From the sequence record OR608733.1: a stretch of DNA of 64,000 nt, one strand, 5' to 3'. A program made the translations under genes and the position numbers. Positions within the stretch are counted from its first letter, which is position 1. Each line of letters begins with the position of its first letter. The notes beneath the pieces are model-generated. The model was not told the DNA's origin and searched no databases. It worked only from the letters and a program-made list of their open reading frames with translations. Of the stretch, positions 2,080 through 47,217 are shown piece after piece.

Positions 2080-2445
2080 TTACGATTTCCGGTGCTTATC
2101 CATATCTAGTTTTACATCAGCATATATCTTGAATCTATCAGATAGACTATCCATATCTACACGCAATGCCCGAATATGCATATGAGTATCTTTTGGTTTA
2201 CCTTCAGACTCCCATACGGCCTTTACGATATCAAATACCACATTGTTCAAATAGTATTCGACTTCATGTTCATCAAGCAAAAGAGTGTCATGGAAACCAA
2301 TACGTGATAAAATGGCGTAATCACGCTGATTAACATCTCTCCAACCTTTACGTACTAAGTAACTTTTACAGATTCCATCTTTTTTACAACTTTTACTAAT
2401 AATTTCTATAATGAACTTATCATGCCATTTATAATCCATAATCAT
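2080..2445 (-). CDS. hypothetical protein
   Basis: 121-aa ORF, GGAG RBS. Confidence 0.8.
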   Translation of the reverse strand: MIMDYKWHDKFIIEIISKSCKKDGICKSYLVRKGWRDVNQRDYAILSRIGFHDTLLLDEHEVEYYLNNVVFDIVKAVWESEGKPKDTHMHIRALRVDMDSLSDRFKIYADVKLDMDKHRKS

Positions 2446-2452
2446 TACTCCT

Positions 2453-2965
2453 TCATTTAATCAGCTTCATTACTAGAGGAACAGATAGACTTATGCCATT
2501 GGCCATTTTAGCTAGGCTATGATAGACATCGTCTGCTTCTTGATTATTGGTACAAGGTATAGAAATGGCATCACCATAGTAAGGACTGTAGTTAATACGG
2601 TCGCCATACACACCACTCACAAAACTATAATCTAATCCATCCGTAGTAGTCATAATAACTACAACATGATCATCCCCAACTATACCGGATTCTAAATCCT
2701 CACATAGTTCCAGTTTTTGTTGCACACCTCGTTGACAGATCCATACCTCACGGTATTGATGATGGGGATATGGATTACATGCTACATCATTTTCACTAAC
2801 GAAGTACATAGTCCCCCAGTTGTAAGACTGGAATTGGGTTGTTTGTTTGTGGGCTTCCCATACCTCCTCCATACAAAAGGTATGTTTGTTAACCCATAGA
2901 CCATCGTTATTAAGACTATCAACGATCCCATCACGGACACGTACTACACGGAGTGTTTTAGTCAT
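2453..2965 (-). CDS. hypothetical protein
   Basis: 170-aa ORF, 8-nt overlap with upstream gene. Confidence 0.8.
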   Translation of the reverse strand: MTKTLRVVRVRDGIVDSLNNDGLWVNKHTFCMEEVWEAHKQTTQFQSYNWGTMYFVSENDVACNPYPHHQYREVWICQRGVQQKLELCEDLESGIVGDDHVVVIMTTTDGLDYSFVSGVYGDRINYSPYYGDAISIPCTNNQEADDVYHSLAKMANGISLSVPLVMKLIK

Positions 2966-3398
2966 CTACGTAACCCTCATCAGATACATAAGTGCGTTCA
3001 GGGCTGAACACATATTTGATGTTATTAATTACAGCTGTGATATAAACCTGATATTCTTTTGAAATAGATTCCATCAGTTCAATAGATACGGAATTTGAAC
3101 TCTGAATAAGTTTATTTACTTTCTTTAGTTCATCAAATTCTAACCGACCGTATATTACACCAACATCTCTGAAACTGATAACTGGATAGTGTTTCCAAAT
3201 ATAACAATTCAGTTTACCAAGATGAATTACTTGAATTGTTTCATCGCACCATTGTTTCTTTTTCTTATTGTAGTATTCAACACGACGTTCGATGAAGACG
3301 CGAGTACCAGAAACAGAGGTGTACGCATTCAGTTCATAACCATACTTATGGTCAACGTTATTTGGATCTTGGCGCCATTTTGGAATGAATGCTTTCAT
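2958..3398 (-). CDS. hypothetical protein
   Basis: 146-aa ORF after terminator at 3426. Confidence 0.8.
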   Translation of the reverse strand: MKAFIPKWRQDPNNVDHKYGYELNAYTSVSGTRVFIERRVEYYNKKKKQWCDETIQVIHLGKLNCYIWKHYPVISFRDVGVIYGRLEFDELKKVNKLIQSSNSVSIELMESISKEYQVYITAVINNIKYVFSPERTYVSDEGYVDD

Positions 3399-3425
3399 TT
3401 GTATTTTCCTTTTTACGAAATAGAA

Positions 3426-3443
3426 GCCCTCCCGAAGGAGGGC
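3426..3443 (-). terminator. intrinsic terminator
   Basis: GCCCTCC-TTCG-GGAGGGC hairpin on - strand. Confidence 0.8.
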
Positions 3444-3456
3444 AATTATACCATTA

Positions 3457-3756
3457 TTAAATTACGAGTCTATATACTTCTTTTAATTTTTCACCAGGGG
3501 TAGCTAGATAATCTACATTATATTTAATAGCAATTACACCCACAAGTTCTTTTCTCAGTAGCTGTTCTACCTGATCGCATAATTTATCAATAGCTCCATC
3601 TTCTACATCCTCGTATAATGGATATTGACTATAAATATTATCAGGTGTAAGTACAGACAGTTTCAATTCCCCATCTTTACCAATGACTGGGTGATATGTC
3701 TGTTTAAGACCTTTACAATGATAGTGATAGGTAATGCGCTGTTGTTTAGTGGTCAT
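3457..3756 (-). CDS. hypothetical protein
   Basis: 99-aa ORF. Confidence 0.75.
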   Translation of the reverse strand: MTTKQQRITYHYHCKGLKQTYHPVIGKDGELKLSVLTPDNIYSQYPLYEDVEDGAIDKLCDQVEQLLRKELVGVIAIKYNVDYLATPGEKLKEVYRLVI

Positions 3757-3767
3757 GTAAAGATACC

Positions 3768-4289
3768 TTAAATAAACCGTTGGGTAGTTCCGTCTTTAAA
3801 GACAGTTAGTTGATTAACATCTTTCAATGAATTATCTGCAATATTCTTAGCCAATAACAATAGATCATCGTGATATGTTTTAATGAGAACTTTAAGCCTC
3901 TCCCTTTGTTTATATCGGAAACCTTTATTAATCACAGTAACTCCATCTGGATTATTTTTATAATTCAGTACAGTGATTGGTGTATTCGGTACAAAGACGG
4001 CTAGTTCGTCATCGAATACAATGTAAACCATCACTTTATAATTATTAACCGATTCTTGGAATTGTTGTGTGATTACATTATAGTCTTTTGTGCGATGGCT
4101 AAGAAACAGCTCACTATTAGCTCGGCAGAAACTATGTCGCGCTTTTTTATCAGCACTCATAACAGCGATACCACGGATAATGAATTTATTATCTAAGGTA
4201 TATTTTCTTTGAGACATCGCATAGTCGACTACATCAACATCGCCGCCAAATAGCACGGCATTTTCACCGTATCCACAAATAAGAGCCAT
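3768..4289 (-). CDS. hypothetical protein (weak Ntn-hydrolase/proteasome-subunit-like N-terminus)
   Basis: MALICGYGENAVLFGGD resembles MTCIVG....V..GAD but lacks the N-terminal Thr nucleophile. Confidence 0.7.
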   Translation of the reverse strand: MALICGYGENAVLFGGDVDVVDYAMSQRKYTLDNKFIIRGIAVMSADKKARHSFCRANSELFLSHRTKDYNVITQQFQESVNNYKVMVYIVFDDELAVFVPNTPITVLNYKNNPDGVTVINKGFRYKQRERLKVLIKTYHDDLLLLAKNIADNSLKDVNQLTVFKDGTTQRFI

Positions 4290-4303
4290 TTATAATTACC
4301 TGT

Positions 4304-4663
4304 TTAAAAATTATATTCAATAAATTGAAGAGTGAATAGTTCACTACATTCCCATGTACGACTTGCTAATTTATATTTACCTTTAACAGGTAAGTCAAAA
4401 TAACGTAATGCTTTTTCTACTGAACCAGCCTCATGATTAACCAATAGAACATTCCTAGCCTTCAGAATATTTGAACAATTTACAAGTTCATAATCATCTC
4501 GCTTAGGTGTCAACATAGCTACATTAGTGCCTGGTTTTCTAGCATACCAGAGCACCTCATGACCCTCTGGATTAATAATAGAGATATATAGCTGACGTTC
4601 AGCGGGTAACCACAAGTTACGTGGATCATACTCTCCATTAACATCAAAGAATTTAAATATCAT
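4304..4663 (-). CDS. hypothetical protein
   Basis: 119-aa ORF, 4-nt overlap with upstream gene. Confidence 0.8.
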   Translation of the reverse strand: MIFKFFDVNGEYDPRNLWLPAERQLYISIINPEGHEVLWYARKPGTNVAMLTPKRDDYELVNCSNILKARNVLLVNHEAGSVEKALRYFDLPVKGKYKLASRTWECSELFTLQFIEYNF

Positions 4664-4899
4664 AGAGTTGGAACCGGTTTTGATGGATCAGCAATTAGTG
4701 CAGATTCTTCTACATAAACCATTGCGAAGTTTTCACCTTCTTTACGAATACCAGTAGAAGGTGTTTTCGATGGATCATAAACGATAATTTGGCACTGCTG
4801 TCCAGCTGTTAAATAAGTTGGGCCAGTTAATGCATTGGGTTTTGGATGAGGAATATCAATTTTAGTAATACAATATTGACCAGTACGAAACTCACGCAT
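4660..4899 (-). CDS. small SH3-like beta-barrel protein
   Basis: FRTGQYC.T..DI...AGQQCQI strand pattern, similar to 6765-6977. Confidence 0.6.
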   Translation of the reverse strand: MREFRTGQYCITKIDIPHPKPNALTGPTYLTAGQQCQIIVYDPSKTPSTGIRKEGENFAMVYVEESALIADPSKPVPTL

Positions 4900-4911
4900 T
4901 ATATTAACCTC

Positions 4912-5598
4912 TTAATGAATAACTGTTGCAGAAGGACGACATTTCATAGTTTTAAAAATGTCAGTAGGATAGATATTACCAGCTTGTCCGAAAGGTTTAT
5001 CGGCTAGAAGAAACTGCGGACAAACTGTTTGTAGATAACCACTATCAGTGGGTAGGAATCCTTCAATATCACTGATGAGAATTTGCCAGATGGGCAATTG
5101 GTTATAATAGTCATCCATATTGTAGTATGCGTGGAGTTTACCACCGAACCCATATACAAACTGATGAGTATCAATTAGACGAATACCAAATTTAGGTTGT
5201 CGTCCCATCCTTTGATCTTCTTCAAATGCGCTCAGTAAATCTGCAATCTCTACGCCACCCGTGATCTGTTTCACTTCTTTTAATTTTTCAAAAATGGCGT
5301 AAAAGGTATTTACTGCCGATTCCTTAGTAATGCAGGCAGTGATCACCAGTTCAGGAAAGAGTGGATCTTCTTTATTACATCCACACGTGTAATAAACAAC
5401 ATTGGAACCAATATCACCTTCTCGTTCAACCACGGCAAAAGGTTTTTTGGATAGTTTCATTTGCTTTTCAATTAACTGTCTGCTATTCTCACGAATAGAT
5501 TCATATTCGTGACTGGCCTTAAAAATAGGTGCTTTGTAATCTATCTCTTTTGGTTCTACTAGATCACTTGCCGATTTGATAACTAATGGATTACTCAT
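4912..5598 (-). CDS. hypothetical protein
   Basis: 228-aa ORF with AGGA RBS. Confidence 0.85.
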   Translation of the reverse strand: MSNPLVIKSASDLVEPKEIDYKAPIFKASHEYESIRENSRQLIEKQMKLSKKPFAVVEREGDIGSNVVYYTCGCNKEDPLFPELVITACITKESAVNTFYAIFEKLKEVKQITGGVEIADLLSAFEEDQRMGRQPKFGIRLIDTHQFVYGFGGKLHAYYNMDDYYNQLPIWQILISDIEGFLPTDSGYLQTVCPQFLLADKPFGQAGNIYPTDIFKTMKCRPSATVIH

Positions 5599-5626
5599 TG
5601 TATATTTCCTTTTCTTATATAAGAAA

Positions 5627-5646
5627 AGGGAGGTATTACCCTCCCT
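5627..5646 (-). terminator. intrinsic terminator
   Basis: AGGGAGG/CCTCCCT stem followed by a T run on - strand. Confidence 0.7.
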
Positions 5647-5980
5647 AATTAAGCATTAAATATTTAGGTTCAGTAGTGGCTCGGATCTTAGCAATAAGTG
5701 CTTTTTGATCACTAACCTTACTAATGGGATATTCTAATAAACGTAAATCCATGTCCCGATGTACTAAACCTAACATTGCCTTATTTTGATGACTATTATT
5801 ACGTAATGCAGCGATATGTTTATCAACTTCATTACTAACAGTCTTTGAAAGCCCTACTAAATACTTCCCAGTTGCAATGTGTTCAATAACATAAACACCT
5901 GCTCCAACTATTTCGCTTCTTTTCCCACGACCGTGCGAAGTACTTGACCAACTATAACACTTATCATCAACTATAAACAT
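5645..5980 (-). CDS. stand-alone, probably degenerate GIY-YIG domain protein
   Basis: GVYVIEHIATGKYLVGLS...H...L...H.N pattern; the catalytic Arg helix reads NEVDKH; no DNA-binding C-terminal domain. Confidence 0.65.
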   Translation of the reverse strand: MFIVDDKCYSWSSTSHGRGKRSEIVGAGVYVIEHIATGKYLVGLSKTVSNEVDKHIAALRNNSHQNKAMLGLVHRDMDLRLLEYPISKVSDQKALIAKIRATTEPKYLMLN

Positions 5981-6023
5981 GGTTAATTCCCGTCCTATAA
6001 CTATCTAATTGGACGGTCAAGTA

Positions 6024-6389
6024 TTAGCTACCAGTCCATGAATACTTATCATAAACTAACCACATTGAATGGATCTTATTGATGATATTGAAAATAGGTT
6101 CTTGGACATCTTCAAAATCACCTAGATCAGCTGCCAGATTGGCCATATATTGGAATAGCCGCTCAGTTGATACATCCACCAGATTGGCAAATGGAATACT
6201 GGCATATGGGATTTGCTTTAACATACCAAACTTATAAATTTTAGCAAACCATGCATCCAACATTGCAACATCTGCTTTAAACATCCAATAAGTTTCAGCT
6301 GGATATGTGCCGTCATGGATAGAGCAGAACAAATCACCAGTAATCGTTTCAACAAGCATTTCCACTTCAGCAGAATTAATTTCGATCAT
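6024..6389 (-). CDS. hypothetical protein
   Basis: 121-aa ORF. Confidence 0.8.
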   Translation of the reverse strand: MIEINSAEVEMLVETITGDLFCSIHDGTYPAETYWMFKADVAMLDAWFAKIYKFGMLKQIPYASIPFANLVDVSTERLFQYMANLAADLGDFEDVQEPIFNIINKIHSMWLVYDKYSWTGS

Positions 6390-6390
6390 C

Positions 6391-6768
6391 TCAACCCACC
6401 TTTAGTTTACTGCAATATAGTCTAAACTTAAGAATATCCTCTACTAAGTTAGACCATAGAGTATACCTATTTCGTGATGCATTTACTTCTTCAATCTTAG
6501 CATTTATATTTTGGCGAAGAACTTTGTAATGCTGATACGCATTAGTCGCATGTTTAGAGAATAAGATAATAATATCATCAGGACTTTTATTTAGCACATC
6601 AGCTAGTGAATCATCATCATATATTTCAATAAGCGCATTAACGATACGATGATGAAGATGGGTTAGTAATTGGTAAATATGATATTCGCTACCAATATAA
6701 TTACCTTTTATAAAAGCTCTTTTACTGTAGAGGATCTGTGCAGTATCTCTTACGCATTCAAGTTTCAT
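6391..6768 (-). CDS. hypothetical helical protein
   Basis: 125-aa ORF, 4-nt overlap. Confidence 0.8.
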   Translation of the reverse strand: MKLECVRDTAQILYSKRAFIKGNYIGSEYHIYQLLTHLHHRIVNALIEIYDDDSLADVLNKSPDDIIILFSKHATNAYQHYKVLRQNINAKIEEVNASRNRYTLWSNLVEDILKFRLYCSKLKVG

Positions 6769-6977
6769 TGTGCATTAACCTGATGTAGATGAACATAAAA
6801 TCCATTACTAGGACCGCTATTAGATGGATATACTAACAGATGGTCTCCATTAACAGATTCGATTATAACTACAGTACCAGCTTTGCATAGTGTAAGATCA
6901 TAGCCGCATTCACCAGTGCTATTAATAATATCTGTGTTGACTACAACTTTGTCACCGGCTTTAAATGAATTTGACAT
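6765..6977 (-). CDS. small SH3-like beta-barrel protein
   Basis: FKAGDKVVVNTDI...KAGTVVIIESV. Confidence 0.65.
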   Translation of the reverse strand: MSNSFKAGDKVVVNTDIINSTGECGYDLTLCKAGTVVIIESVNGDHLLVYPSNSGPSNGFYVHLHQVNAQ

Positions 6978-6985
6978 ATATCACC

Positions 6986-7288
6986 TCAGTTATAGGCGTG
7001 AAGAATATCATCCATATCTGTACATTGTACAGTTTCAATTTGATTATAATTGTCGGCATTTAAAACTCTAAAGCCGCCTTCGGGATTACCCTCATCAACA
7101 CCTAATACGGTTAGGTCATCACCTTCATTAGCAAACTTCCATTCTAAATAACCATTCTTTTTACAAGTACGCATGATCCAAATATCCTGTGTTGCTTGTA
7201 GAATCATACCTACTTGAACTTTATTCTTAGCGATAAGACTAATACCATTAGCTAGCACGTTTGCTAGACAGCTCACTGTTGTACTCAT
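6986..7288 (-). CDS. hypothetical protein
   Basis: 100-aa ORF, GAGG RBS. Confidence 0.8.
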   Translation of the reverse strand: MSTTVSCLANVLANGISLIAKNKVQVGMILQATQDIWIMRTCKKNGYLEWKFANEGDDLTVLGVDEGNPEGGFRVLNADNYNQIETVQCTDMDDILHAYN

Positions 7289-7344
7289 TTCTTTTTACCT
7301 CTTTACCACTTTTATCTTCAGTTAACCATGACTTGTTAAAGATA

Positions 7345-7497
7345 CTATTTATGATGGGATTGAATTTCGGTGATTCTTTCTTTTTCTGATCTATATCCAT
7401 CGATATCACCTATACTAATAATTTTATTAATACCAACTAATGTACTACTTAAAATAGCTATAATCAAAAACAGTGCTACATATTTGATTCCTTCCAT
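7345..7497 (-). CDS. small single-pass membrane protein (not in ORF track)
   Basis: Hand-translated MEGIKYVALFLIIAILSSTLVGINKIISIG... (50 aa), GAGG RBS. Confidence 0.6.
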   Translation of the reverse strand: MEGIKYVALFLIIAILSSTLVGINKIISIGDIDGYRSEKERITEIQSHHK

Positions 7498-7580
7498 TTT
7501 GAGTACCTCAAATAATGATTATCTAACTTAGCATGGTTATTATATATTTTTAAATTTACTTATAATAAACCATTTATGCA

Positions 7581-7883
7581 TTATGGCAATAGTTCACTGT
7601 ATTTAGAATAGTTGTCAATCACCCATTGATTAGACATATACTTAGGAGTATCACCTAGTAGTTTAGTATAGGTTAGAAGATAGATTATTTGTGCTTTATT
7701 AAAGTCTAATCCAGCCTCTTCCCAACCATTACGGTACTGCTCCACCTTATCACCATGTGCGCTAATGAGCCCAGTACAGGACTCAATATACCGGTCTTCA
7801 CCAGCGAATACAGTACTAATGAACTTATCGGTATTAGCCAACATATACGACGCCGAGTCAATTACCTTATTATTCATTTTCAT
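7581..7883 (-). CDS. hypothetical protein
   Basis: 100-aa ORF. Confidence 0.8.
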   Translation of the reverse strand: MKMNNKVIDSASYMLANTDKFISTVFAGEDRYIESCTGLISAHGDKVEQYRNGWEEAGLDFNKAQIIYLLTYTKLLGDTPKYMSNQWVIDNYSKYSELLP

Positions 7884-7917
7884 TTGAATATACCTGTTTA
7901 TATAAAGGGATATAAAA

Positions 7918-7935
7918 GCCTCCCCGAAGGGAGGC
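7918..7935 (-). terminator. intrinsic terminator
   Basis: GCCTCCC-TTCG-GGGAGGC followed by TTTT on - strand. Confidence 0.85.
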
Positions 7936-7945
7936 CATTATGACG

Positions 7946-8377
7946 TTACATTGTGAAACGAATTGACACACCACAAATAGGACTATTAGAATCTGTCCAA
8001 ATTTTAGCTGTACCATCATTTTTAATAGTTACACAATAACCCCAGCGAAGGTTATTTATTTTAGTGGTATACCCACTTTTAAATACAGTCATGTCTTTAT
8101 AAAGCTGTGGGATAGTTGGTACTTTTTTAAACTGCATTTTACCAGATAAATCACGATAGTAGAGTTTATCTACAATCACATTATCGAATTTTTTATAATC
8201 ACCAAAGACTTCAGATAGATTGAACTCTACCCCATCTGTTTTTAGTGGGGCAGTCATAAAACTACCTTGCTCAGTTGTAACCATGCTGATAGCAACATCA
8301 TGGTCTAATAGAAATCGAGTTTCACCATTAGTTTTCTTATATACTGGGAAACTTCCTAGCTGTTGTAGAACACTCAT
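7946..8377 (-). CDS. hypothetical beta-rich protein
   Basis: 143-aa ORF, AGGAG RBS. Confidence 0.8.
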   Translation of the reverse strand: MSVLQQLGSFPVYKKTNGETRFLLDHDVAISMVTTEQGSFMTAPLKTDGVEFNLSEVFGDYKKFDNVIVDKLYYRDLSGKMQFKKVPTIPQLYKDMTVFKSGYTTKINNLRWGYCVTIKNDGTAKIWTDSNSPICGVSIRFTM

Positions 8378-44359: not shown

Positions 44360-44755
44360 TTATTGAGTAGTCTTCTTAATTTGCTCATCTACGTATACTC
44401 TTACAATGAACCAATTGATTAGGCCAAAACCTTTTGGTGTGATGGTAATGTCATCTTTATATCCATTTTTAGTGATTACATTACGTAATACTTTAATTGC
44501 TTCAGGTGGAATAAGATTAGCATTACCGGTAACACTATACTCGAAATAATAACCTACACCTGGTAAATAACCTGATGCAATCTGGTTAGTACCTGTGATA
44601 TTACTAACGTGTTGGAAGTCACTAAAAGCATTCTTGTAGAATAACAAAATATTAGGAATTACTTCATCCCTAATAGTAGAACTAGTAATGGCATCCGCCG
44701 ATGGAAAATAAGGTACTAATTCATCTGTTACATTGGTGCTATTAATATCGGACAT
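44360..44755 (-). CDS. hypothetical early protein
   Basis: 131-aa ORF after the promoter at 44802. Confidence 0.8.
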   Translation of the reverse strand: MSDINSTNVTDELVPYFPSADAITSSTIRDEVIPNILLFYKNAFSDFQHVSNITGTNQIASGYLPGVGYYFEYSVTGNANLIPPEAIKVLRNVITKNGYKDDITITPKGFGLINWFIVRVYVDEQIKKTTQ

Positions 44756-44801
44756 AATCTTTTCCTCATTATAAAAGGATAAATATCTTTATGGTAATCC
44801 T

Positions 44802-44833
44802 GTAATATAGATTTAAATTAATTTATAATGAAT
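44802..44833 (-). promoter_or_regulatory. phiKZ-type early promoter
   Basis: TATATTAC core with AT-rich upstream region. Confidence 0.8.
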
Positions 44834-44838
44834 GGCAT

Positions 44839-44863
44839 AAAGGAGCCCCTGGTGGGCTCCTTT
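44839..44863. terminator. terminator-like hairpin, potentially bidirectional
   Basis: AAAGGAGCCC/GGGCTCCTTT stem. Confidence 0.75.
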
Positions 44864-44875
44864 AATGTAATAGGT

Positions 44876-45038
44876 CCGACCCCTATCTAGAGGTCGGTGA
44901 GTAGCAAGGCACCGTAGTTGGGGTTCGTGTCGTTCCTGACGATACTTTAGTACCCCGGTTTATTTACGACTGGATCACCCCCTTAAAGTGCAGTGCGTTT
45001 TACGCAAACTGCCTTGCTCTATATCATTGCACTGTGCG
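44876..45038. ncRNA. candidate structured RNA or leader (function unknown)
   Basis: GC-rich intergenic tract with several stems, including a 9-bp long-range helix AGCAAGGCA(44903)/TGCCTTGCT(45010). Confidence 0.4.
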
Positions 45039-45105
45039 TATTTTTATTCGTTAGCTAATCTTATGACTTAGAGTTATATTTACATACCCCTTAAGGAAAA
45101 ATGCA

Positions 45106-47217
45106 ATGATAGACTCATTTAGGAAGCTAATGGGCTCGCTATCAATTACTGAAACTGATCAAGAAATTATCATCAGTGGTTTTGATGGTGCTGCATTCAT
45201 TAGAGATATTAACAAGTATTGGCGAACCACTAAATTAGCTACGCAGTTATTTAACACGGTTAGTCGTCGTAGTATTTCATTTTATAAATTCTTTGCTCCT
45301 GAAATATATTACATGCTAGAAGCAGTAAAGAATTATAGAAGTAGATACATCTCTATTAAAACTGTTAATGCCATCCGTGAAGCAATGCTTCAATATACCT
45401 GGTTAAAAAATACTCGTCCTGTAGATACCAACTCTGTACCAGGTAGACTCAATTTCAAGATGTTAGACAAATTGACATTTACACCAGATGAGTCTCAAAA
45501 AGCTTATTTTGAAAATTATAATTATCGAATTGACCAGTATGGTTTACGTGGTGATATTGTTGCAGGTAAACCTGGTACTGGTAAGACATTCATGACGATG
45601 GCTATTGCTGAAATGGTTGAGTCGGATATCATTATAGTTGTTTGTGAAAAGAAGTCTATTGATCTAATATGGAAGCCATCTATTATTGAGATGTATAAGG
45701 AAAGACAAAAAGTATGGTCGACCATTGATGATAAAGCCTACAACGGTCAAAGAATACTTATATCCCATTACCAGGCGCAAGATAAAATAATTGATCTATT
45801 AAGAAGCGGTATATTCAAAGGTAAGAACATTACGGTGATTCTGGATGAATCACACAATATGAACGATCCTAATTCTGCACAATCTCTTAAGTTCCAGCAA
45901 ATATGTTTTATGTCTAACTCTAATAACAGATTATTAGCGTCAGGTACCCCTGTTAAAGCACTTGGTTCTGAATTAGTAAGTGCATTAAGAGTATTAGACG
46001 ATCTCTTCACCAATGAGGTTGAAGAACGTTTTAAGAAAGCATTTGGAAAAGAGACACAGAAAGGATTAGATATTGTCCAACATCGCTTTGGGTTAATTGC
46101 GTACGTCATTGAAAAGAAAGATACTGAGGTTTTACCACCGAGGATAAAAGCGTATCGTATCAAGATACCAAATGGATCACAGTATACTCTTAATGCCATT
46201 AAACGTGATTGTGAAGCTTTTATTAGAGAACGTGTAAAGTTCTATGCTGCGCGCCGACCAGAAGATGAGAAGTATTGGGCTAAACTAATGGCGATACACG
46301 AGAACTCTCTTAAGACCCAGGCGCAGAAAGATGGTTTCGCTCGCTATAAGAATTTGATTAAAATAATTCAGAAGAATCAAGACCCGCGATACATTGGTGA
46401 AGAAATTAAAGAATCTAACCAATATGAAAAAATGTTTATAGAGCCAACTTTACCTCGTAATGAAATAGCTGCTTTTAGAGATATTAAATCAGTTATAAAA
46501 TACGTTATGCTAAAGATACAAGGTGAATGTTTGGGAAGGGTTTTAGGTGCTAAACGCATTCAGTGCCATGTGGACATGGTACCGTATATTGACTGGGTTG
46601 GTATCACTGAATCAACTATGAAGAAAACGATTGCATTTACATCGTTTGTTGAGGTTGTTGATACTGTTGATAAGTACACCAATAAATTAGGTATGCATCC
46701 GGCGGTGGTGTATGGTAAAACCAATGACAATTTACCTCAAATAATCAGTAGATTTGAGAAAGACCCTAAATTAAATCCATTGGTAGCTACATATGCTTCC
46801 CTTTCAACAGCGGTCCGTATGACGATGGCTGATACTATGGTGACAATTAATTCACCGTTTAGGCATTACATTCTAGAACAAGCTATTGCTCGAATTTACC
46901 GTAAAGGTCAGGATTCACAAACAGTCGTATATCAATGTACTCTCGATACAGAAGATGAACCGAATATCTCAACAAGGTCAGATGACATTCTAAAATGGAG
47001 TCAGGCAATGGTTGAAGCTATTATGGGTATTAAATCTCCATTTGAGATCACAGAGTCATTAGAAAGTTATGTTGATAAAAATAATAATTTTGATGAAAAT
47101 AAAATCATTTATCAGATGCTAAAAGAATCATTTGAGAAGTATGATATCGCAATTGATTTTAATGACTTTGATACACGTATGTATAAACCATATCAGCCCG
47201 CATATATGCGGTTTTAA
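45106..47217 (+). CDS. SF2 (SNF2-like) helicase, gp203-like
   Basis: GKPGTGKT, ILDESH, SGTP, SLSTAVRMT, QAIARIYRKGQ; TATG late-type motif at 45062-45065. Confidence 0.9.
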   Translation: MIDSFRKLMGSLSITETDQEIIISGFDGAAFIRDINKYWRTTKLATQLFNTVSRRSISFYKFFAPEIYYMLEAVKNYRSRYISIKTVNAIREAMLQYTWLKNTRPVDTNSVPGRLNFKMLDKLTFTPDESQKAYFENYNYRIDQYGLRGDIVAGKPGTGKTFMTMAIAEMVESDIIIVVCEKKSIDLIWKPSIIEMYKERQKVWSTIDDKAYNGQRILISHYQAQDKIIDLLRSGIFKGKNITVILDESHNMNDPNSAQSLKFQQICFMSNSNNRLLASGTPVKALGSELVSALRVLDDLFTNEVEERFKKAFGKETQKGLDIVQHRFGLIAYVIEKKDTEVLPPRIKAYRIKIPNGSQYTLNAIKRDCEAFIRERVKFYAARRPEDEKYWAKLMAIHENSLKTQAQKDGFARYKNLIKIIQKNQDPRYIGEEIKESNQYEKMFIEPTLPRNEIAAFRDIKSVIKYVMLKIQGECLGRVLGAKRIQCHVDMVPYIDWVGITESTMKKTIAFTSFVEVVDTVDKYTNKLGMHPAVVYGKTNDNLPQIISRFEKDPKLNPLVATYASLSTAVRMTMADTMVTINSPFRHYILEQAIARIYRKGQDSQTVVYQCTLDTEDEPNISTRSDDILKWSQAMVEAIMGIKSPFEITESLESYVDKNNNFDENKIIYQMLKESFEKYDIAIDFNDFDTRMYKPYQPAYMRF

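Follow-up and report, generated by a model that had tools for sequence, protein, structure and literature searches.

An abundant structured RNA of phiKZ-like jumbo phages carries an invariant block complementary to the 3′ tail of 16S rRNA

The intergenic spacer beside the virion helicase gene of phage phiKZ carries an abundant, structured non-coding RNA (ncRNA) of a family shared among phiKZ-like jumbo phages, and the main feature of this RNA is an invariant single-stranded block complementary to the 3′ tail of 16S rRNA. The strand, both ends and the abundance of the transcript can be read from public RNA data, its structure covaries across the family, no open reading frame (ORF) is conserved, and the complementarity to 16S rRNA has sharp boundaries. 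The family is real and well supported, and its predicted target is an unusual one. A preliminary description of this DNA, made from the letters of the sequence, was right about the RNA but wrong about its strand, one of its helices and its role, and it missed the block. We regard an independent minus-strand gene for a structured ncRNA, with the strand and fold given below, as almost certain. For the explanation as a whole, which joins this gene and its fold to docking on a 16S partner, the chances appear to be even.

The window is the whole stretch analyzed, 64,000 nt of record OR608733.1, and consists of phiKZ-type DNA. Positions 44700-45300 are 100% identical to phiKZ (AF399011) on the reverse strand, and window position x corresponds to phiKZ position 257873 - x. 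The element lies in a 350-bp spacer (44756-45105) between PHIKZ204 (44360-44755, minus strand) and PHIKZ203 (45106-47217, plus strand), the latter encoding a virion SNF2-type helicase; ordinary Shine-Dalgarno (SD) sites (AAGGA, GAGGA) stand upstream of both genes. The preliminary description had noted a GC-rich element with no ORF, and both points hold: the spacer contains no ORF of at least 30 aa, and its GC content reaches 0.44-0.51 over 44850-45049, where the surroundings have about 0.27-0.35. No tRNA or tmRNA gene is predicted by ARAGORN anywhere in the window. An Infernal/Rfam search, which had been proposed for the element, returns no family match: Rfam 15 gives none in the window at gathering thresholds, and a relaxed scan of 44700-45200 gives chance-level matches only (E of at least 1.1, 16-20 bits), none of them on the RNA core.

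Four public RNA runs were compared with 44400-45300, and transcript ends were read from adaptor and poly(A) junctions in contigs. The summed word depth in Nanopore cDNA is 2,300-8,000 over 44865-45019 and falls to 20 towards PHIKZ204 and to 76-138 towards the helicase, word depth in such (Logan) contigs being a rough guide that reflects expression poorly. Three Nanopore records have the reverse complement of the strand-switch primer joined directly to 45020, and in one record poly-T stands directly before 44871, equivalent to a poly(A) tail on a minus-strand RNA. Read in the sense of the RNA, the order is primer, minus strand from 45020 to 44871, and poly(A); we presume the Nanopore primer sequences used to read these junctions to be correct. 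A second study has an Illumina adaptor joined to the same position, 44871, and in a third an Illumina contig spans 44834-45043, which fits a longer form ending past a second hairpin. The same reading has an internal control, the forward strand-switch primer being joined to 45065 and poly(A) coming after 45245, which places the start of the plus-strand helicase transcript at the G of TATG. The TATG motif (45062-45065), one of the two bounds given to the element at the outset, is therefore a real start site. This plus-strand species is 181 nt long, with a depth of 138 versus 77 further downstream, and its end at 45245, within the helicase ORF, may be premature.

A small RNA, one of the readings considered in the preliminary description, is thus present in public data, on the minus strand, and it is abundant, structured and conserved. 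It has ends of its own, the 5′ one at a promoter-like motif and the 3′ one defined by a hairpin, in contigs that pool enriched and control libraries. The spacer almost certainly holds an independent gene, on the minus strand of the window and the plus strand of the phiKZ reference (about 212853-213002), for an abundant ncRNA of about 150 nt. The main species (44871-45020) begins at 45020, the A of TATA, and ends at 44871/44872, 4-5 nt beyond hairpin P4. The promoter region (45021-45045, minus strand) has TAT ahead of the first transcribed nucleotide and, following an A-rich run, a conserved TAC at about -18 to -20 (45038-45040). TAT(A/G) stands directly before helix P1 in all 14 aligned homologs, and the upstream TAC is kept in most; transcription would start at this phage TAT(A/G)-type initiator and would end either past P4 or about 35 nt further, past the second hairpin. 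Since the RNA is on the minus strand, with its 5′ end 45 nt from the helicase start site at 45065, it is neither a leader of the helicase mRNA nor antisense to it: a riboswitch or attenuator of the helicase would be part of the helicase mRNA, on the plus strand and upstream of the start codon, while the structured RNA is on the other strand and bounded at 45020.

The second, terminator-like hairpin (44842-44860, minus strand) and the conserved CUUUAUGCC that follows it (44834-44842) form the end of the longer species. In the alignment the hairpin covaries and the trailing motif is kept in most homologs. The preliminary description had bounded the element by a terminator, which is not confirmed: a canonical terminator scan finds no site, the hairpin fails its rule, and a short U run follows it on the minus strand only. 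The CUUUAUGCC motif also occurs in the Escherichia phage Goslar and contains a TATG initiator motif, and its sequence suggests that it may have a double role as terminator tail and start site for the downstream genes. Between the terminator hairpin and PHIKZ204 there is an AT-rich motif (44802-44811, reading TCTATATTAC on the minus strand), which also follows the homologous RNA in Phabio, uv31 (L031) and Psa21. This motif resembles the phiKZ early-promoter core, and PHIKZ204 would accordingly be a separate unit.

The RNA takes the form of a three-way junction, where P1 closes the ends, P2 is a short hairpin and P3 is a long bipartite hairpin, all on the minus strand. The 5′ strand of P1 (45010-45018) pairs with its 3′ strand (44903-44911), and five of the six modelled pairs show compensatory changes. 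P2 (44990-45012) has a nearly invariant lower stem, GCAG/CUGC, with 99% of cells paired; this stem is swapped for other complementary sequences in Psa21 and in L396/L414, while the upper stem and loop are variable and are absent from the short uv12/DT01 type. The P3 domain (44920-44956) is built of P3a (44920-44924/44952-44956) and P3b (44927-44933/44939-44945), with compensatory changes in 5/5 and 7/7 pairs. Its apical loop is a GNRA tetraloop in most homologs (GGGA, GUGA, GAGA, GCGA), in the minus sense only, and CAGGA in phiKZ. P4 (44876-44897) is a 9-bp GC-rich 3′ hairpin whose sequence varies between phages, the hairpin itself being always there in folds and alignment. Most of these helices had been seen from the letters: the CCGACC/GGTCGG helix is P4, the 9-bp long-range helix is P1, the pairings GGGGT/ACCCC (44920/44952) and GTGTCGT/ACGATAC (44927/44939) are P3a and P3b, and a hairpin described as competing is P2; P1, P3a and P3b covary across 21 distinct homologs. 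The exception is a proposed pseudoknot, whose arm GCACTGTGC at 45029 is not conserved in relatives and, lying upstream of the mapped 5′ end at 45020, falls outside the RNA.

The covariation that had been suggested as a check is clear, and four helices have support. In a model-guided alignment of 22 sequences, 91.5% of cells are paired and 18 of 25 pairs have changes on both sides, above the shuffled and slid controls. The covariation score is 0.556, compared with 0.229 for shuffles (none of 500 reaches the observed value) and no more than 0.124 after sliding the partners by 1-3 columns, in an alignment that was fitted to the model and in which pairing is somewhat inflated. The fold is nevertheless secure because of the size of the effect and the slid controls. 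MAFFT and RNAalifold alone missed P1 and P3a owing to misalignment, and for this reason a hand-drawn structure and re-alignment with a covariance model were needed. Significance comes from covariation and not from the energy of one sequence, as the phiKZ fold is modestly better than shuffles (z of -1.8 for the plus and -2.9 for the minus strand). Across the family, cells with G.U outnumber those with A.C by 33 to 11 in the minus sense, the reverse of the earlier view that most G-U pairs favor the plus strand.

P3a is GGGGU/ACCCC only in phiKZ and SL2, the other genera having GAUAC/GUAUC. The ACCCC of phiKZ and SL2 implies that this C run (44952-44956) can pair with the G run of the invariant block (44972-44983), and in the minimum-energy fold of the single phiKZ sequence the two are indeed paired. 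It is possible, judging from this modelled fold, that the pairing is a masking switch specific to phiKZ.

How widespread is this RNA? By blastn, PA1C/PS119XW, PhiPA3, Phabio and 201phi2-1 share its core (about 44967-45049) at 70-85% identity, and the helicases of PA1C, PhiPA3, Phabio and 201phi2-1 have only 51-58% protein identity with that of phiKZ. Pattern scans that covered IMG/VR and named phage records, together with one metagenome scan, added Viktualia, DT01, Psa21, a Noxifer-like contig, seven IMG/VR contigs and five metagenome contigs. A covariance model built from 16 sequences and the hand-drawn structure scores 42-118 bits on 22 loci. It has a single match in a phiKZ-type genome and one copy per genome across the family, the positive genomes being phiKZ, SL2, PA1C, PhiPA3, Phabio, 201phi2-1, Psa21, DT01, Viktualia and uncultured relatives. 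It has no significant match in Xanthomonas RTH11, Ralstonia RP12, Erwinia Rebecca, Serratia Moabite, Vibrio Yong XC32, Aeromonas D6 or the Pseudomonas phages EL and OBP, and the few motif matches in these eight chimalliviruses lie inside ORFs. Most matches to the 17-mer in the metagenome scan were ParB-type coding sequence and a few were real 16S genes, the only members among them being L385, L448 and L396/L414/L474. A loose viral scan (8-mer, gap, 8-mer) gave noise among the matches listed. One IMG/VR contig (L340) appeared to co-vary with the enterobacterial 16S tail and was rejected, as it carries a true 16S 3′ end and a tRNA-Ile spacer beside a lambdoid prophage; contigs of this type are a trap in scans for motifs complementary to the anti-SD.

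The element is near the helicase gene in every setting, and its flanking genes and their orientations differ between genera. It is directly upstream of the helicase in phiKZ, SL2 and PA1C; in Phabio and 201phi2-1 it occupies a gap of about 320 nt between two genes of the opposite (minus) strand, 0.7-1.6 kb from the helicase, and in PhiPA3 it is codirectional with all its neighbors. Such changes of neighbors and orientation argue for a gene of its own and not for a switch of the helicase/virion block, a role that had been proposed for it and that is also at odds with an RNA on the minus strand.

The block itself (44968-44984, minus strand, J2/3) is the sole long invariant run of the family. It is located in the junction between P2 and P3, it is free of pairing in the consensus structure, and it reads as an extended SD sequence, its 17 nt being complementary to nt 1525-1541 of 16S rRNA. 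In E. coli numbering, 16S nt 1530-1542 constitute the single-stranded anti-SD tail, while nt 1525-1529 belong to helix 45. The Pseudomonas 16S 3′ end has exact matches in many Pseudomonas genomes. The positions facing 1525-1541 are compatible with pairing in 16-18 of 18 homologs, and one position beyond the two boundaries this falls to 5/18 and 10/18. Among the same 18 homologs, U1541 is faced by A, or by G in five, with one exception; U1537 by G, or by A in three; and G1526 by C, or by U in four, again with one exception. The substitutions therefore keep a pair apart from the two exceptions, all pair-keeping ones being A/G or C/U. Contiguous complementarity extends over 14-21 bp, and cofolding with the last 20 nt of 16S rRNA yields -16 to -29 kcal/mol net, the cost of unfolding being deducted. 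The core is GGGGG in 15 of 18 members, so that a G.U wobble falls midway along the predicted duplex; the perfect GGAGG is confined to Phabio, Psa21 and the Noxifer-like member.

We infer a 16S partner because the conserved block and the accessible tail coincide exactly and because the substitutions preserve wobble pairs. From these sequence comparisons, the 16S tail may be the functional partner of the RNA with about equal odds for and against. All confirmed hosts are Pseudomonas and share one tail sequence, which means that no true co-variation with the target can arise, and the informative substitutions in the block are few and are transitions, a common class of change in any case.

A second conserved unpaired segment, AACUACGG in J3/1 (44912-44919, minus strand), is complementary to the 5′ strand of 16S helix 45 (CCGUAG). 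Together with the 3′ strand of P1, it provides runs of 5-10 nt against 16S nt ~1499-1516, that is, the 5′ strand of helix 45 and the preceding linker, the segments targeted differing by homolog. CUACGG(C/U) faces GCCGUAG itself in five rows, and the general core is only ACG(G). Read on its plus strand, the locus resembles the end of a 16S gene in which the apex of helix 45 has been replaced by P3. Because this second arm is not uniform and the 3′ strand of P1 follows its own partner and not 16S rRNA, its complementarity is suggestive and is perhaps a trace of origin; the RNA family may have evolved from an antisense copy of the 3′ end of a 16S gene.

What could such a block do? The P2-P3 junction would expose an invariant super-Shine-Dalgarno element of 17 nt, predicted to pair in trans with the anti-SD tail of the host 16S rRNA (nt 1530-1541) and with a further 5 nt reaching into helix 45. 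The RNA, itself untranslated, would thereby dock on 30S subunits, and the mRNA-docking site might be occupied, masked or re-purposed during infection. Tethering, competition with host mRNAs, protection of the tail and interference with 30S maturation are other effects that docking could have. Docking on 30S as an untranslatable super-SD ligand seems the most economical mechanism. More broadly, the family could represent a natural “anti-anti-SD” acting in trans, which, in cells infected by nucleus-forming phages, occupies, tethers or reprograms the 30S subunit or else invades helix 45 of nascent 16S rRNA; we offer this tentatively and put its chances at a little under even. Several findings weigh against such a mechanism. 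EL and OBP also infect Pseudomonas and yet lack the RNA, the minimum-energy fold of phiKZ would hide the block, and invariance could instead reflect a protein site or a tertiary contact. In addition, nearby phage genes use ordinary SD sites, and a blanket masking of the anti-SD would thus hurt the phage as well.

Like the SD sequence of an mRNA, the block is purine-rich, single-stranded and complementary to the 16S 3′ tail, with a GGAGG/GGGGG core. It differs in spanning 17 nt and not 4-8 nt, in reaching into helix 45, in lacking a start codon and a conserved ORF, and in being placed in a junction of a covarying three-way fold, where it is invariant across phage genera. A search of the literature for phage RNAs aimed at the anti-SD found none, the nearest idea being the SD/anti-SD mimic of OLE RNA, which binds bS21 (PMC12054373). 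Both OLE RNA, through its P6 element (PMC12054373), and the phage RNA are structured ncRNAs with a ribosome-docking sequence linked to the 30S platform, a link that for the phage RNA is predicted. However, OLE pairs both strands internally and mimics the duplex, whereas the phage RNA has the SD-like strand only, unpaired in the consensus, and no anti-SD-like strand. The two also differ in distribution (Bacillota versus phages of Pseudomonas), their sizes and folds are unrelated, and the phage RNA has no Rfam match. There is a conceptual likeness to 6S RNA and to ribosome-associated ncRNAs, where an abundant RNA imitates the nucleic-acid ligand of a machine and occupies its binding site; unlike 6S RNA, the phage RNA would target the 30S anti-SD and not RNA polymerase, and no sequence or fold is shared.

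ONT-cappable-seq has delivered short RNAs of phiKZ and 201phi2-1, including, according to the main texts, an sRNA upstream of gp182 that is conserved in phiKZ, 201phi2-1, EL and PhiPA3 (PMC10914365, PMC11512511). The RNA described here resembles these as their main texts present them (PMC10914365, PMC11512511), being an abundant, structured phage transcript of less than 250 nt with a mapped start and a hairpin, conserved across jumbo-phage genera; it differs from the sRNA placed there upstream of gp182 in its locus, the PHIKZ203/204 spacer. The main texts of both papers, as distinct from their supplementary tables, contain no 16S complementarity, covariation model or family description for it (PMC10914365, PMC11512511), and neither the locus nor the 16S complementarity is mentioned in the main texts of the phiKZ dRNA-seq, Grad-seq and ONT-cappable-seq papers or of the 201phi2-1 transcriptome paper. 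The published phiKZ Grad-seq was sampled 10 min after infection, and its text does not mention the RNA. The RNA may be among the 17 “5′UTR-derived” candidates of phiKZ or the three intergenic sRNAs of 201phi2-1, which are listed in the supplements only.

Complementarity to the 16S 3′ tail is also what a translation initiation region would show, which raises the question of whether the RNA is an mRNA for a very small protein translated from a strong ribosome-binding site. The block is indeed a near-perfect site of this kind, and in the 201phi2-1/uv20 group a GUG 14 nt downstream opens an ORF of 11-15 codons. No ORF is shared across the family, however, a start codon at SD spacing (~5-10 nt downstream) is absent from most members (phiKZ, SL2, PA1C, PhiPA3, uv12/17/19, Psa21 and the Noxifer-like member), and substitutions in the helices are compensatory and not codon-like; we therefore consider a coding role highly improbable. 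Even less credence is due to a DNA-level element, such as a replication origin or a priming or packaging site, or to a plus-strand RNA. A divergent junction and a GC-rich inverted-repeat structure would suit the former, and an ssDNA origin or priming site was among the first ideas for this locus, but a minus-strand transcript with defined ends is present, the G.U bias and the GNRA loops are specific to a minus-strand RNA, and the placement relative to divergent junctions is not conserved. The RNA might instead be a cis-acting leader or attenuator of the minus-strand operon that begins with PHIKZ204, the short form being a by-product of premature termination like the 5′UTR-derived candidates of phiKZ, 17 of which are reported in the main text of Putzeys et al. 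2024 (PMC10914365). It lies directly upstream of PHIKZ204 in the same orientation, and two successive hairpins and a longer species reaching 44834 would be in keeping with attenuation. Such a leader is very unlikely all the same, for the early-promoter-like TCTATATTAC intervenes between RNA and PHIKZ204 and is kept in Phabio, uv31 and Psa21, the genes that follow vary from phage to phage, with the neighbors in PA1C running the opposite way, and the depth of the flanks is about 100-fold lower.

Two other readings accept the ncRNA and differ in its partner. The RNA could serve as a scaffold or sponge for a phage or host protein, for instance a ribosomal or RNA-binding one, that recognizes the block and the GNRA-capped P3, its likeness to an SD being a by-product of protein specificity. 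The block is invariant even where a wobble would be allowed, RNP scaffolds typically show a structured three-way junction whose unpaired segments are conserved, and the binding of ribosomal protein bS21 by the SD/anti-SD mimic of OLE RNA is a precedent (PMC12054373). Against it, the boundaries of the block match the 16S segment 1525-1541 within one nucleotide, the substitutions seen keep 16S pairing, and the RNA lacks the intramolecular anti-SD strand of OLE P6; overall a protein partner appears unlikely, if the most plausible of the alternatives. It is a good deal more doubtful that the target is nascent pre-16S rRNA and not the mature ribosome, with the block, J3/1 and the P1 3′ strand pairing with the tail and with the two strands of helix 45 while the 3′ minor domain is still unfolded, and new 30S subunits being blocked or destroyed. 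The plus-strand likeness to a 16S gene end with a swapped helix 45 apex speaks for this, as do the recurrent 5-10-nt complementarity to nt ~1499-1516, in segments that vary by homolog, and the nominal energy of -46 to -64 kcal/mol predicted for a duplex over the last ~44 nt. The second arm is not uniformly conserved, however, and the 3′ strand of P1 covaries with the 5′ strand of P1 instead of tracking 16S rRNA.

Docking on the mature 30S subunit would be of interest for the biology of these phages. Nucleus-forming phages separate transcription from translation, and must therefore control host ribosomes from a distance; to our knowledge, only proteins, such as PHIKZ014, are so far known to do so. 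If the proposal is true, an abundant and conserved RNA of a phage, directed against the one part of rRNA by which mRNAs are selected, would open a new way of taking over translation. Natural RNAs that target the anti-SD in trans are rare, and this would be one of them. Tools that already exist allow the hypothesis to be tested directly in the best-studied jumbo phage. Even if the 16S idea fails, the RNA is among the best-supported structured RNAs of phiKZ-like phages, and the covariance model offers a ready marker for its family.

Two further observations concern relatives of this locus. Goslar has an intergenic element between two ORFs of the same strand (L239:1385-1560:-, 87.2-87.4 kb of the record), made of a 7-bp hairpin, GGAGGUGAUCC, a strong fold (z -3.8), a hairpin and then GGGCUUUAUGCC. 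It has the 11-nt motif and the trailing-hairpin signature of the family, but the model gives it only 9.5 bits and it was not counted as a member. A covariation test is impossible because the one relative found, the Goslar-like IMG/VR contig L303, is near-identical, and the element could be an analogue or a very distant relative. As for the helicase, its homologue measures 2.9-3.2 kb in SL2 (L106), PhiPA3 (L002) and PA1C (L003), compared with 2.1 kb in phiKZ; its tblastn match in these three phages is in two pieces, and the annotation of PA1C has two overlapping CDSs. The sequences suggest an insertion in these helicase genes, which may be an intron, an intein or an extra domain.
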